The notes under the pieces: generated by a model
The model's input: only the letters and a program-made list of their open reading frames with translations
The model's database searches: none
What the model was told of the DNA's origin: nothing
Made by a program: the position numbers and the translations under genes
Origin: Ascidiella aspersa
Lineage: Eukaryota
Direction of reading: 5' to 3'
Assembly: GCA_963924565.1 (NCBI GenBank)
Contig: OZ004607.1
Coordinates: 2,418,001 to 2,482,000, forward strand
DNA length: 64,000 bases
In this document: in pieces, positions 2,652 to 55,454 of the stretch
How the letters are laid out: each line of letters begins with the position of its first letter
Numbering within the stretch: the stretch's first letter is position 1

Positions 2652-3470
2652 ATGTCAAAGAACCAAAGCGATTATGCAAGGAATCAGCTGAAAAAAGAGA
2701 GCGATGATGGATTTTCTGATGATTCTGTTGCCACGGTTACTGATTGGTCATCACAAGAACATGAACCTGTAAGTGAAGAGTCCGATTGTGAAGAACAAAG
2801 TGACTTGGATCAAATGGATACTTCTAAGAAGGATAAAAGTCAGGATAATCCAACAAAGATGAACAAAATTACAAATAACAGCATGGAGTTTCGGTGCAAC
2901 ATTTGCGAAAAGTTGTTTAAAAATCGTTATAAGGTCAATAGCCATTTATCCAGATTTCACTTTAAGAAACACAAATGCAAAGTTTGCGAGAAAGCGTTTG
3001 GGACAATTGGCGATCTTGAAAACCACATAAGAATTCACTCTGACGAAAAACCCTTTAAATGTGCTTATTGCGATAAAGGCTTCAAAGTAGCTCAAAACGT
3101 AAAAGTACACGAACGAATTCACACTGGGAAAAGACCATATCAGTGCAAATATTGTGGAAAGTGTTTTACTCAACTGTCTAACCTCAACACACATAATATC
3201 ACACACACAGGCGAAAAACCTTACAAATGTAAAGTTTGTGACAAGTGTTTTACCCAGGCTGGAAGTCTCAAAACTCATGAAATAATTCATACCGGAAAAA
3301 AACCTTACAAATGCTTGGAATGCGGAAAGTCTTTTAAACAGGCAGGACATCTTAAAAATCATAAAAGAAGTCACACTGGAGAAAAACCTTACAAATGTAG
3401 AGAATGTGGAAAGTGTTTTAACCATACAGGAAATCTTAATAGACACAAAAGACGCACGCACGCTATATAG
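2652..3470 (+). CDS. C2H2 zinc-finger protein, 7 fingers, acidic N-terminal module
   Basis: 272-aa ORF; seven CxxC...HxxxH fingers with TGEKP-type linkers; N-terminal SDDGFSDDSVAT..WSSQEH. Confidence 0.93.
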   Translation: MSKNQSDYARNQLKKESDDGFSDDSVATVTDWSSQEHEPVSEESDCEEQSDLDQMDTSKKDKSQDNPTKMNKITNNSMEFRCNICEKLFKNRYKVNSHLSRFHFKKHKCKVCEKAFGTIGDLENHIRIHSDEKPFKCAYCDKGFKVAQNVKVHERIHTGKRPYQCKYCGKCFTQLSNLNTHNITHTGEKPYKCKVCDKCFTQAGSLKTHEIIHTGKKPYKCLECGKSFKQAGHLKNHKRSHTGEKPYKCRECGKCFNHTGNLNRHKRRTHAI

Positions 3471-4308
3471 AGAAAAAAAACTTAAAAAATATACCCTGTA
3501 AAATATTTTTGTAAAATATAAAACTGAACATTGAATTATTAGTTCCTGGACAGAACCCTTTTATTCTGTTCAAATATAAAAAACAGTAATGTTGCAAATA
3601 ATTGAAAATACACCTACAATTTAAAAGAAATGTGAATATGCGCGAATATATATTCATAAGAATGTAATCAATTTTCAAACTCGATAAACTAACAGGATCC
3701 TGTATTTTTTCTATCCGCTTAACTCTTCATTTTATGTTATCCATCATTAGCGTTGAAACACTTACTTTAAGTTGTGGGATCTTTATTTAATCCTGTTCTT
3801 TTTTGTGCCTTAAATAAAGCGTTTGTAATTACCCCTGTACAATTTATATGTATCGTTCGTTTCAAACGCTGTCATAATTTTTACTTTTCGAATTTTACTC
3901 TCTAAGAAATATATGTGGAAAATGTATCCAATTCTTGTATTATTATTGTCATAATGTTGAGAGCCCGCTCCGCTGTTAGTCTCTTTGCTATTAGTTACAG
4001 ATTTTTTAATGGTGATGTTGCTTTGTTATTTTATAAGTTATAGACCTTATAAACCAAGCATTTGATGCAAGTTTGGAAAGCTTAGTTGCTAATGAAAGGT
4101 TCGGGTTCCAAGAAAGTTTTTTTATGTTAATTGTGCAACAAAACAATAATAGTATGGTCACAGATTTGGCTTGAGAAGAATTAAACAAATTAAGTCACAT
4201 GAGAAAAATGGGAATATATCTTAGATGGATCAATGTAGTTTAAAATAGCATTGGTAAAAGCTCGTGCTTTGTATTATTAGTGAAACTATTTTTCAAGTAA
4301 ATTAAAAC

Positions 4309-4800
4309 ATGTCAAACCACCATAGCGATTTTGTTACGATGGAACTGACAAAAGAGAGCAAGGATTCTGTTGCCACGACAACAGACTGGTCATCACAAGA
4401 ACATCAACCTGTGAGAGTCCGATTTTGAAGGAAAATTTTACTTAGATCAAATATCTACTTCTAAGGAAATATAAGTAACGATAATAGAAAAAGAAAAAAA
4501 TTAAAAAACACCAAGATGGAGTTTCGATGTAACATTTGCGAAAAGTTGTTCAAAAAGCGCCATAAGCTCAATACACATTTGTCCACAACCAAGCTAGCAA
4601 CTTAAATTCGCACGAACGAATTCACACTGGAGAAAAAACATATGAGTGCAAAGTTTGTGAAAAACGTTTTAGCCGGACAAATTACATGTAAGAATTCATA
4701 CTTTAGAAAAAACCCTACGACTGCAAATATTGTGGAAAATGTTTTAGTCGGCCAGGAAGTCTTGAATAACACAAAATTGTTCACACTTCTAGAGAAACCA
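4309..4800 (+). pseudogene. Degenerate ZF paralog (B-type-like)
   Basis: Starts MSNHHSDFVTMELTKESKDSVATTTDWSSQEH then frameshifts and stops; [12 protein letters not shown] and HTGEK remnants. Confidence 0.85.
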
Positions 4801-52683: not shown

Positions 52684-54030
52684 CATAATACAGTAGGTTA
52701 GAAAAAAAGAAATGTTAATCCTTTTGGATAATACAGTAAGTTAGAAGTAGGGAATGTGGCGTTTTGTGAATGCAATAATTTAAAAGGATTGATATACTAG
52801 GTTAGAGGAAGTGAGGCATTTTTTTCTTACTGATAATACAGTAGTTTCAAAGTAAAGAATGTGTTTGTTTTCGGATAGCACATTAAAGGCTCATTTACAC
52901 TGCAAGCGACGCTGGATCGTTTTTAAATTGATTTAATGCAACCGTCTACCCTGGCTCGCTTAAGCGTCGCGCCGAATCGCTTGCGAAGCGAAAAATCGCT
53001 TGACGCTTGAAACCTGACCCTGGAGTGCAGGGAATCCGTTTCGCTGTTTATGTTAATTTTTCTATATTCGTGTATGTTTTAGTAAAAACGTTAAGTACTT
53101 GCAAAATTTTGTACACATTTAGTGCTTTCTTTGGGCAGCATATCAAATGCTAGCCTTTCTGTACTAGTTGTTTCTATTTTGGCGCTGGTTTAGATTCCTA
53201 CCACATTTTTTCTGGTATATTCAAAATTGAAATTGCAAACTCGGAGAATAAATTAATATGGGTGAGATTTTCATTAATAAGGTTAAAGGTTTCTAATTGC
53301 CTTACCATGACAGGAATGCAAAAAAGAAAATAGTTGGCAGCAAGTTAACTAGTTTAAATATTTGAGGTGCGTAGTTGACTTAAAATATTAACAAACACTA
53401 ATTAACTATTTACGGTTATCGCGTTTTCACAAAGTAGTTTTATTACACTTTTCATTAGTAGTATGGATGAGGACGAGTAAACTCGAATTAGAAAACTCTT
53501 TTTTCGCGTTTTGAGCCGACACTTTACTGCTTTCTTAAATGTAATTTAACACGTTTTTAAGTGCAAAAAAAGATCCGAGGCCTGTCTCATTTACAATATT
53601 CTTTTGAAACAATTATTAAATCAAGGCACAATATTTGGGTTAGGGTGTCGGTTAGTGTTCAGGGTGGGTCAAGTATTATTATTTAATAATATTGCTTAGC
53701 CTACCCAAAGCAGCTTAATCCAAATAATGTTCTTTGTTGTAGGATTTTATACCAGCGCCCGACTCTGTAAGCATTTTCATTAAATATGATCAACATTTAT
53801 TTCAAGTTTCACCTTTTAACCTTGACTCTCGAGCGCCACCGTTAAACACGCGAATTTGCGCTGTAAACGCATCGTCGCAAGCGCTTAAGCTCCCCTCGCT
53901 AGTAGTGTAAATTGGCCTTAACTTAGAAGTAATGAACCTGGGTCGTTGCTGGTAATACAGTCAGTTAGAAATAAGTAACTTGTTCCTTTGCACATTTTAC
54001 CATGAGCTTAAAGTAAGGAATGTGGCTATT
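52684..54030. repeat. Degenerate ~42-bp minisatellite split by a MITE
   Basis: GATAATACAGTAAGTTAGAAGTA.GGAATGTG-like units on both sides of 52887-53918. Confidence 0.65.
52887..53918. mobile_element. PIF/Harbinger-type MITE
   Basis: TIRs AGGCTCATTTACACT / AGTGTAAATTGGCCT; TAA TSD. Confidence 0.85.
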
Positions 54031-54219
54031 GGCATCCAATGGTGGCCAAACCATAACGGGCGCATTGTGGTCTCAGGTTCCCCTGGCCCCAAAGTACTTT
54101 CACTACAGACTGGTGTTGTGTTTTCATAGTTTAACTGGCTGGTTATATTTTGCCACAATATAGGTTAATGATACCATGATTAACTATGTGCTGATTTTTT
54201 TAAGATTTACAAAAAAAAC

Positions 54220-55454
54220 ATGTCGAACTATGAGATTGAAGTTGCGTCAAACGATTTAAAATGTCAGAGCGATGATGGATTTTCTGATGATTCTATTGTC
54301 ACCATTACAGAATGGTCATCACAAGAACATAAACCTCTAAGTGAAGAGTCCGATTGTGACGAACAAAGTGACTTGCATGAAATGAATATCAGGAAAGGAC
54401 AAAGTAAGAATCCGTCAATACAGAATACAGAGTTCCGATGTCACGTTTGCGAAAAGTGTTTTACGAGTAGTATTAAACTGAAAAGGCATTTATCCAGAGT
54501 TCATTTTAAGAAACACAAATGCAAGGTTTGTGGGAAACTTTTTCGAGAAATTACCGCACTTGAAAACCACATGAGAATTCACACTGGAGAAAAAAATGTG
54601 CTTATTGTGCTAAAATGTTTCAACCATGTTCAAAGTTTAAAAGTACACGAAAGAGCCCATCATGGGGAAAGACCATATGAGTGCCAACATTGTGAAAAAA
54701 GTTTTACACGACCGTCAAATCTCAGTCAACATATTAAAATACACACTGAAAAAAAAACTCACAAATGCAAAGTTTGCGGCAGGAGTTTTAGCCAGTCAGG
54801 AAGTCTTAAACATCATGAAAGAATTCATCCGGAAAAAAATCTTACAACTGTGTTTATTGCGTTAAACGTTTCAACTGTGCTCAAAACCTTAAAGTACACG
54901 TGCGAGTTCACACTGGTGAAAAGCCCTTTAAATGTGCTTATTGCTGTAAATGTTTTAGCCATGTTCAAACCTTAAAAGCTCACGAAAGAATCCACACTGG
55001 CGAAAGGCCGTATGGGTGCAAAGTTTGTGGCAAATGTTTTTCCCGGACCGGGAATCTTAAAGCTCATGAAAAAATTCACACTAAAAACAAATCTTTTAAA
55101 TGCCCTTATTGCGAAAAATGTTTCAGCCATGCTAAAACCTTAATATTACACGACCGAATTCATACTGGTGAACGACCATATGAGTGCAAAGATTGTGGAA
55201 AATGTTTCACACGACCGTCATATCTCAACCAACATAATAAAATACACACTGGAGAAAAACCTTACAAATGCAAAGTTTGTGGAAAATGTTTTCTACGGGC
55301 AGGACATCTTAAAGATCATGAAAGAATTCACACTGGAGAAAAACCTTACGAATGCAGACAATGCGGAAAATGTTTTAGCCAGACATCCAGTTTCAATAAA
55401 CATAAAAGAAGGCACTCTAAAGATAAATCCTTCAAAACCAAAACTTGTGATTAG
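54220..55454 (+). pseudogene. Long ZF paralog (~12 fingers), frameshifted
   Basis: Finger 3 scrambled at ~54595, frameshift at ~54830; distal fingers in ORF 54900-55454 end KTCD* like A-type genes. Confidence 0.85.

Follow-up and report, generated by a model that had tools for sequence, protein, structure and literature searches.

A large family of C2H2 zinc-finger genes with a conserved acidic N-terminal module in Ascidiella aspersa

Tetrapods (KRAB), insects (ZAD) and carp-like fish (FiNZ) each have a large family of fast-evolving zinc-finger genes with an N-terminal module of its own. A cluster of C2H2 genes in the tunicate Ascidiella aspersa carries a common N-terminal stretch as well, and the question is what has kept this stretch uniform and what it could do for the proteins. 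We have analysed a 64,000-nucleotide stretch of the genome (the window) together with the relatives of its genes elsewhere in the genome.

The family and its copies in the window

A tblastn search with the first 73 residues of the gene at 2652 gave 13 module matches in the window (E <= 1.4e-9, Table 1), in agreement with the initial annotation, which had counted at least 13 paralogs with a common N-terminal motif. That motif, SD[D/E]GFSDDS...SDLD, is present as a consensus but is not an exact pattern, since S-G-L-D replaces its S-D-L-D in the copies at 17197, 24517, 35427 and 45630, and the copy at 21875 reads S-K-E-S-D-C within the module. In the whole genome there are at least 148 module matches (E <= 4.5e-4, from 150 scored of 166 candidates), and 143 of these lie on contig C1 between 0.63 and 5.39 Mb. 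By our count from the table of matches, 120 of the 148 belong to open frames that span 200 codons or more, and 19 are themselves interrupted by a stop. The repeated pattern is far beyond chance.

Table 1. Family members, repeats and transposable elements in the window (positions of the whole stretch)
Coordinates	Strand	Module match start	Feature
2652..3470	+	2652	Intact member, 272 aa, 7 fingers; module core ~2697-2816; positions 3364-3409 excluded from later searches
4309..4413	+	4309	Module remnant of a pseudogene; deletion within module, stops downstream
6510..7217	+	6510	235-aa member, degenerate module
9651..10451	-	10451 (minus)	Sole minus-strand copy, probable pseudogene; in-frame stop in leader, remaining 254-codon frame begins at TTG
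17197..18414	+	17197	Intact 405-aa member, 10 fingers (our pattern); reference for alignments and structure model
21875..22633	+	21875	252-aa member, finger 1 degenerate
23487..45382			Two tandem copies of 11.1-kb unit, 23487-34512 and 34360-45382, 96.8% identical
24517..25359	+	24517	280-aa member, first of three near-identical copies from the 11-kb tandem duplication
28898..29614	+	28898	Intact module, frameshift after finger 2
33561..35223			C-rich satellite, ~51-bp period, 33 copies
35427..36269	+	35427	280-aa member, duplicate of gene at 24517
39807..40523	+	39807	Frameshifted copy (after finger 2), duplicate of copy at 28898
40631..43231	-		LINE-type retrotransposon ORF, 866 aa, RVT_1 domain
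45630..46472	+	45630	280-aa member, third copy of duplicated unit
49683..50348	+	49683	221-aa member, 4 fingers
54220..55454	+	54214	Member split in two overlapping ORFs, 54220-54975 and 54900-55454
59511..63488	-		Ty3/gypsy gag-pol ORF, 1325 aa, uninterrupted

Each gene is a single coding exon, with a 15-residue leader, a 39-residue core that is serine-rich and strongly acidic (net charge about -12), a basic linker, two constant fingers and a variable array of 4-17 fingers that is hypervariable at the DNA-contact positions. The module has only one conserved Cys and one conserved His, and a conserved Phe and Trp. A conserved acceptor-like site, TTTTCAG, is found 15-17 nt upstream of the ATG and there is an in-frame stop at most 30 nt upstream of it in 34 of 42 genes, so that no upstream coding exon can add another domain. 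The number of fingers, counted with the pattern C-x2-C-x12-H-x3/4-H, varies as had been claimed, although the range is 4-10 in eight ORFs of the window and 4-17 in 41 ORFs, compared to 5-13 in the initial annotation. The same is true for the recognition helices: among 296 array fingers from 40 proteins, helix positions -1, +2, +3 and +6 vary most, with entropies of 3.0, 2.85, 3.0 and 3.8 bits, compared to 0-1.9 bits for the Cys/His/Phe/Leu scaffold and the linker. Two positions that do not belong to the contact set, +1 (2.4 bits) and the one preceding -1 (2.8 bits), are variable as well. The dN/dS ratio, from two independent pairs only, is 1.35 at the contact positions and 0.38 at the other finger positions.

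The mode of evolution is birth and death in a region with transposable elements, as was first proposed. Each 11.1-kb unit holds two family genes, one LINE and one satellite, and in addition to the elements in Table 1 there is a broken copy of the LINE reverse-transcriptase ORF at 29722-32322. The C-rich satellite also forms shorter arrays, 23487-24313 and 44469-45426, and a 280-aa gene follows some 200 bp downstream of each. The copies at 4309, 10451, 28898, 39807 and 54220/54900 are broken, the last one by a frameshift in the array, as its two overlapping ORFs indicate. We conclude that this is a family of at least 148 single-coding-exon C2H2 genes that expands and decays by tandem duplication, and it has so far been seen in Ascidiella aspersa only.

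Silent and replacement changes in the 117-nt core

Neutral evolution of the module had been put forward as the outcome that would speak against a function, and the module does not evolve in that way. Its dN is 0.11 compared to 0.23-0.56 elsewhere, the lowest of all gene parts (845 of 861 pairs among 42 genes). These genes were picked by a filter that requires a module motif, but the pattern of rates was unchanged when seven divergent genes that fail the filter were added (49 genes). The conservation is equally strong at synonymous sites, the pN/pS being 0.61 for the module and 0.59 for the flanks (21 independent pairs), and therefore cannot simply be purifying selection on a protein effector. 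The dS is 0.19 in the 117-nt core but 0.70-1.01 in the flanks, and the core dN/dS of 0.58 is higher than that of fingers 1 and 2 (0.25 and 0.34). Module pN is below flank pN in 13 of 15 independent pairs, and module pS below flank pS in 14 of 15. Third-position identity is 0.854 in the module compared to 0.50-0.69, codon homogeneity at conserved-residue columns is 0.925 compared to 0.71-0.75 in fingers 1 and 2, and uncommon GC-ending codons are fixed at these columns of the module. Loss of the frame is followed by decay of the module, whose median identity to the consensus is 0.94 in the 42 intact genes but 0.857 in the 18 broken copies. Measured against its silent changes, the peptide is under no stronger constraint than the parts beside it; the conservation of the core is one of DNA, and selection on the protein alone cannot account for its low dS. 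Gene conversion or a function at the nucleotide level acts on the core as well, and the evidence on which of them is mixed. Silent-site conservation of one short coding island over more than 100 paralogs is unusual, and makes the island a clean case for telling the two apart in a multigene family.

What is conserved could mainly be a nucleotide element of 117 nt, and not a peptide, that serves the mRNA or DNA of all paralogs: a small-RNA target common to the family, an internal promoter or factor-binding site, a dual-coding stretch, or a U1/5' splice-site-like element that keeps the A-rich linker from being polyadenylated prematurely or allows alternative splicing. The low dS, the third-position identity, the homogeneous codons and the deficit of pS all point in this direction. 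So does the ratio of module to flank divergence, which is the same within 100 kb (0.42) as between chromosomes (0.41) and therefore fits selection better than local conversion. There is also a GTAAGT inside the module, with the AGT in 42 of 42 genes and the GTA in 30, but five intact genes have CTAAGT instead. The predicted RNA folding of the island is no better than that of shuffled sequences (z = -1.54 and 0.03), its length far exceeds a small-RNA or factor site, and a DNA search found it only within genes of the family (40 scored of 149 candidates). Nor are changes in the island any rarer in the youngest pairs (18/702 compared to 39/1680). In copies where the frame of the module is broken while the array is still open, the extra conservation is gone, which links the constraint to the module being translated. 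We consider such a nucleotide element rather unlikely.

The uniformity might instead be a by-product of concerted evolution, where short-tract gene conversion or unequal crossing-over resets the island and the peptide has little or no function beyond being tolerated. Silent and replacement sites are slowed by an equal factor, as the pN/pS values show, and module divergence reaches a plateau of 0.11-0.12 while flank divergence climbs from 0.25 to 0.42. In four of the six youngest independent pairs silent differences are higher in the module than in the flanks (e.g. 0.231 and 0.018), in the pair L002/L003 five of six module differences fall on sites where the other paralogs differ among themselves too, and on the flank tree the module sites take 211 steps where 90 would be the minimum. 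However, the effect is independent of distance and chromosome, no donor of the L003 haplotype was found among the 42 sampled genes, and the module sites have a consistency index of 0.43, which is not inferior to the 0.31-0.36 of the remaining gene parts. The borders of the island are sharp, fixed and coincide with the peptide, broken copies within the same clusters have not been homogenised, and third positions are without GC enrichment in our reading of the codon table. Concerted evolution as the whole explanation is in our opinion improbable.

The peptide and its possible partners

That the module is unrecognised has held in every search. Pfam gave nothing on it (35 isolated modules at E <= 10; no families for the first member and a best single-member E of 0.0076), profile searches of the PDB sequences and of 1,835,955,588 representative proteins returned no matches, a word-index search had none, and the best score in the ESM Atlas, 0.82, is at chance level. 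With hmmscan, neither KRAB (PF01352), ZAD (PF07776), SCAN (PF02023) nor BTB (PF00651) was found in four full-length members from the window (E <= 1), the 35 isolated modules (E <= 10) or four divergent members. In the AlphaFold2 model the fingers reach a pLDDT of 82-94, but residues 1-70 only one of 38-50, and these form no secondary structure; the alignment contained paralogs only (34 rows), so that the low confidence is no proof of disorder. The module is predicted to be an intrinsically disordered stretch and would, if so, be a cluster of short motifs and not a folded domain, and the independent effector domain of the initial annotation, taken as a folded unit, is not borne out.

The same annotation suggested that the module may be a KRAB-like effector in a family that possibly silences transposable elements. 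The architecture does resemble that of the KRAB-, ZAD- and FiNZ-ZNF clusters in its tandem birth and death, its hypervariable array and its surroundings rich in transposable elements, and the elevated dN/dS at the contact positions, from its two pairs only, agrees with it. There is also a precedent in cyprinid fish, FiNZ, described by Wells et al. 2023 (PMC10547256) as a 28-aa glutamate-rich N-terminal sequence without known homology, whose family is linked there to derepression of transposable elements in zebrafish. Against this stand the missing matches to KRAB, SCAN, BTB and ZAD, and the motif content: CtBP, HP1, Groucho WRPW and eh1 motifs occur in 0 of 42 modules and a SUMO-interaction-type pattern in 4 of 42. 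We find such a repressor unlikely. A classical acidic activation domain would agree with the predicted disorder, with a charge of -8 to -16 in the most acidic 39-residue tile, and with the conserved Phe and Trp. But none of the 42 genes has an N-terminal tile that passes the published rule, which (PMC10550315) asks for a 39-residue tile with a charge of at most -9, W+F+Y+L of at least 7 and an interpolation term; most genes have 3-5 such residues. The predictor has a high false-negative rate according to its authors (PMC10550315). An activator of this kind seems very improbable to us.

The explanation that we prefer, and to which we give an even chance as a whole, is that the peptide is a docking or regulatory tag common to all paralogs, built as a cluster of short linear motifs. 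Such a tag would link the paralogs, whatever DNA their arrays read, to one shared partner or control pathway, and its uniformity would be kept by selection together with sequence exchange between paralogs, which would account for the conservation of silent sites. Partner binding, the identity of the partner and any role in control of transposable elements are what we infer from this. The sole concrete candidate partner is SCF-beta-TrCP with acidophilic kinases, which would govern turnover of the proteins or carry a ubiquitin ligase to their target sites. Substrates of beta-TrCP carry the degron D-pS-G-hydrophobic-x-pS or its nonphosphorylated form, DDG-hydrophobic-x-D. The latter is described for CDC25A/B as a site that beta-TrCP binds (Kanemori et al. 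2005, cited in the review PMC10487276). In the present family 28 of 42 genes have it in the strict form, where the module is conserved best, compared to 6 of 21,000 composition-preserving shuffles; it was spotted post hoc among many possible motifs. Acidic or Ser variants are found in 39 of 42 genes (263 of 21,000 shuffles), and the strict form, in our reading, in one of seven divergent intact members. The modules have on average 3.1 S-x-x-D/E sites, and the genome encodes a gene with a Beta-TrCP_D domain (66.8 bits). A 39-residue peptide would be a compact subject for tests of partner binding.

Comparison with known systems

Both KRAB and ZAD are established folded domains, ZAD being a four-cysteine zinc-binding dimerisation fold. 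The KRAB-ZNF genes of tetrapods and the ZAD-ZNF genes of insects share with the present family the tandem birth and death, the hypervariable DNA-contact residues and a common N-terminal module, but here the module has no Pfam match and is predicted to be disordered. KRAB is encoded by exons of its own, whereas in 34 of 42 genes of the present family the ATG has an in-frame stop ahead of it. It is a long shot that tunicates, the invertebrates most closely related to vertebrates, have evolved their own KRAB-independent zinc-finger control system and that the 117-nt island is a functional nucleotide element for simultaneous regulation or homogenisation of the whole family. Human ZNF mRNAs have microRNA sites in the codons of the finger linkers, and the likeness is a coding stretch common to many paralogs that is possibly read as RNA, although here it is a single N-terminal island of 117 nt and not a repeated linker. 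To the beta-TrCP substrates CDC25A/B the likeness is the exact match in 28 of 42 modules, a putative relationship drawn from the pattern alone, while most divergent family members have lost the motif.

No relative of the module was found in the 1.84 billion representative proteins, a set in which fish ZNFs are to be expected. Compared with FiNZ-ZNF as it is described (PMC10547256), both are large, lineage-restricted tandem C2H2 families with variable arrays and a short acidic N-terminus without known relatives, but compared by description the module is 39 residues long and Asp/Ser-rich, and FiNZ 28 and Glu-rich. A further difference is the single coding exon of the present genes. A tunicate case with an unrelated, disordered and acidic module would show that families of this kind have originated repeatedly, with different effector ends.

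Zinc-finger genes in the window and in the genome

The initial annotation described a cluster of zinc-finger paralogs with a common N-terminal module, and both the window and the genome bear this out: the acidic, serine-rich module is encoded at 13 places in the window, a 64-kb part of contig C1 in an assembly of 308.6 Mb, and at least 148 places in the genome match residues 1-73 encoded by the gene at 2652 (a lower bound, with 150 of 166 candidates scored). As many as 143 of these matches fall in the stretch of C1 from 0.63 to 5.39 Mb; the other five are on C5, C6 (two), C7 and C8. 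Counted from the match table, 120 of the 148 sit in a frame that stays open for 200 codons or more, and 19 have an internal stop. Eight of the 13 window copies are in the ORF set and encode 4-10 fingers each by our own finger pattern, the gene at 6510 (235 aa) was a later addition to the window gene set, and the remaining four are plainly broken or truncated.

We took 40 loci of 3 kb each from the 148 matches, all with long open frames and from across the range of E-values. Every one of them, including the four on C5-C8, has a zinc-finger ORF. The motif filter was passed by 33, which together with nine window genes make up the set of 42 genes; the seven divergent loci that failed it were read later and added back for a re-check of the rates. 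Rates were computed without the broken window copies at 4309, 9651, 28898, 39807 and 54900, and the later searches skipped positions 3364-3409 of the window. Copies L050 and L052-L056 (C1: 1.03, 1.43, 0.97, 5.31, 2.51 and 2.54 Mb) have lost the first half of the module or carry it out of frame, and keep an array frame of 200-330 codons with 6-10 fingers that is open from an internal Met; they are either young pseudogenes or members without a module.

The GC content of the window outside transposable elements (TEs) is about 34%. A unit of 11.1 kb, which contains a LINE and a 51-bp satellite as well as one gene for 280 aa and another with a frameshift, is present as two tandem copies with 96.8% identity and a partial third one. 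Each of the three 280-aa genes has the satellite about 200 bp upstream. The satellite unit includes telomere-repeat-like TAACCC words, and its arrays cause a strong local negative GC skew.

Features of the window with their positions
Feature	Position	Strand	Description
Ty3/gypsy gag-pol frame	59511-63488	minus	1325 codons, uninterrupted
C-rich satellite	23487-24313, 33561-35223, 44469-45426		period about 51 bp, up to 33 copies
Acceptor-like TTTTCAG, in-frame stops, ATG	17175-17196		example of a conserved arrangement
GTAAGT	17311-17320 region		example of a 5'-splice-site-like word
Run of N	203-360		158 N

Anatomy of the proteins and relatives of the module

In an alignment of the first 150 residues, a variable leader of 15 residues is followed by the module core of 39, with 5 invariant and 15 almost invariant positions, and by a variable linker rich in Lys and Asn with a median net charge of +3. 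Two conserved fingers come next, the first with the spacing His-x4-His, and then the variable array. Residues 15-56 have a median net charge of -12. Most genes have a pyrimidine run with CAG (or TAG) at 15-17 nt before the ATG (a strict pattern detects it in 27 of 42), and 34 of the 42 have an in-frame stop within the 30 nt that precede the ATG. This ATG is the true start of the family genes, and since both an acceptor-like site and in-frame stops precede it, an upstream exon cannot add a further N-terminal domain. The acceptor-like site suggests either an upstream non-coding exon or trans-splicing of a spliced leader.

For residues 1-150, with an input alignment of 34 paralog rows, AlphaFold2 gave no secondary structure in the stretch 1-70 (pLDDT 38-50) and a pLDDT of 82-94 for the fingers. 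The module is, on this model, best described as a predicted disordered cluster of short motifs. A folded domain packed on fingers 1 and 2 was considered, and the model has none.

The module had been called unrecognised, and it stayed without a match in all our profile searches. Pfam, searched with whole proteins and with 35 isolated modules, returned finger families and scattered single-member noise only (best E-value 0.0076). A profile of the 35 modules matched no PDB chain at E <= 10, and none of 1,835,955,588 representative proteins at E <= 0.001, a library so large that a profile of 66 positions needs a strong match to reach significance. None of the nine candidates from a word-index search with residues 1-75 was significant, and the best score in the ESM Atlas, 0.82, is reached by shuffled proteins a third of the time. 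The 181 matches of a protein search with residues 1-135 were all generic zinc-finger proteins. P0076 and P0084, which cover nearly the full query, were rejected as module-bearing relatives, the module being absent from both sequences; another generic finger match, P0065, bears the name of a C2H2 protein from the bacterium Endozoicomonas and is unrelated to the module.

A known domain is rejected on the searches of Pfam, PDB sequences, the word index and the 1.84 billion proteins, and judged by its sequence the module is new. This means that no homologue was found in the other species sampled; Ascidiella aspersa itself is seemingly not in the protein collections, where the full-length matches to the gypsy polyprotein of the window reach at most 60% identity, with one partial match of 64% over 55% of the query. 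Its close relatives may be missing there too. A literature search for an N-terminal module in tunicate or ascidian zinc-finger proteins found no relevant description in the articles proper.

Conservation of the module at silent sites

What most deserves to be followed is the conservation of the module at silent sites, its DNA being kept no less than its residues. Rates were estimated by the Nei-Gojobori method for 845 of the 861 pairs of the 42 genes.

Divergence of gene parts among the 42 genes
Gene part	dS	dN	dN/dS
Leader	0.71	0.35	0.50
Module core	0.19	0.11	0.58
Linker	1.01	0.56	0.56
Finger 1	0.91	0.23	0.25
Finger 2	0.70	0.24	0.34

Between +40 and +160 the identity of nucleotides reaches 0.85-0.90, compared with 0.57-0.84 in the adjoining coding sequence and about 0.5 in the upstream sequence, and third positions are identical at 0.854 in the module vs 0.50-0.69 elsewhere. 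Where an alignment column has a conserved residue, the same codon is used at 0.925 in the module, compared with 0.71 and 0.75 in fingers 1 and 2, and the shared module codons include GC-ending ones in an AT-rich genome. Among 15 independent nearest pairs with a flank divergence of at least 0.1, the module lies below the flanking coding sequence in pS in 14 and in pN in 13. The ratio pN/pS is alike in module and flanks (0.61 and 0.59). The pattern was unchanged with the seven divergent genes added (module dS 0.25 vs 0.72-1.07).

Gene conversion among the paralogs may maintain this uniformity. Divergence of the module levels off near 0.11-0.12 regardless of the divergence of the flanks, and the six youngest independent pairs have no deficit of differences in the module (18 of 702 sites vs 39 of 1680); in four of the six, silent differences are higher inside the module than beside it. 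The two members of one pair differ from each other at five sites where other paralogs vary as well. Selection may also maintain it, as the ratio of module to flank divergence is constant with distance (0.42 within 100 kb, 0.36 within a megabase, 0.37 beyond and 0.41 between chromosomes) and the borders of the conserved island are sharp and match the extent of the peptide. Moreover, 18 copies with a broken module are further from the consensus in it (median 0.857 vs 0.94), and in six of them it is conserved no better than the fingers. On a tree built without the module, module sites show no lower consistency than those of the other gene parts. Conversion, selection or both together may act on the island.

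A stable RNA structure of the island found no significant support, the island folding no better than its shuffles. The word GTAAGT spans Val-Ser codons in the module; AGT is present in 42 of 42 genes and GTA in 30, and GT is missing in five intact genes. A +1-frame ORF of 22 codons, seen by eye, runs from ATGATG within the Asp-Asp-Gly codons to TAA within GTAAGT.

Fingers, possible function and known families

The four DNA-contact positions of the helix rank with the most variable positions in a finger, with an entropy of 3.0-3.8 bits at -1, +3 and +6 and 2.85 bits at +2; the residue before -1 (2.8 bits) and +1 (2.4 bits) also vary, and scaffold and linker positions have 0-1.9 bits. The dN/dS check proposed in the initial annotation gave a ratio above 1 at contact codons, 1.35 vs 0.38 at the other codons. 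It is based on 14 replacement and 3 silent changes in two independent pairs, the only ones with arrays comparable finger by finger, which is too few to claim positive selection and suggestive only.

That the module is an effector domain is possible, and TE repression by the family would be pure analogy. CtBP, HP1 and Groucho (WRPW, eh1) motifs are found in 0 of 42 genes, a SUMO-interaction-type pattern is found in four, and none passes the published charge and aromatic/leucine rule for acidic activation domains. The best-conserved stretch contains DDG-hydrophobic-x-D, a nonphosphorylated beta-TrCP motif according to the review PMC10487276, in 28 of 42 genes, and in 39 if acidic or Ser substitutions are allowed, far above composition-preserving shuffles. 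By our own reading one of the seven divergent intact members retains it, and the D domain of beta-TrCP is encoded in this genome. The match was found post hoc, and this candidate link is a lead, not a result.

The family is a further tandem zinc-finger family that is restricted to one lineage and has an N-terminal module of its own. The KRAB, ZAD and FiNZ families are of the same kind, FiNZ being the closest. It appears to be a member of none of the three, for FiNZ as judged by profile search. Its module is new in sequence, predicted to be disordered, and conserved at the level of DNA no less than that of protein.
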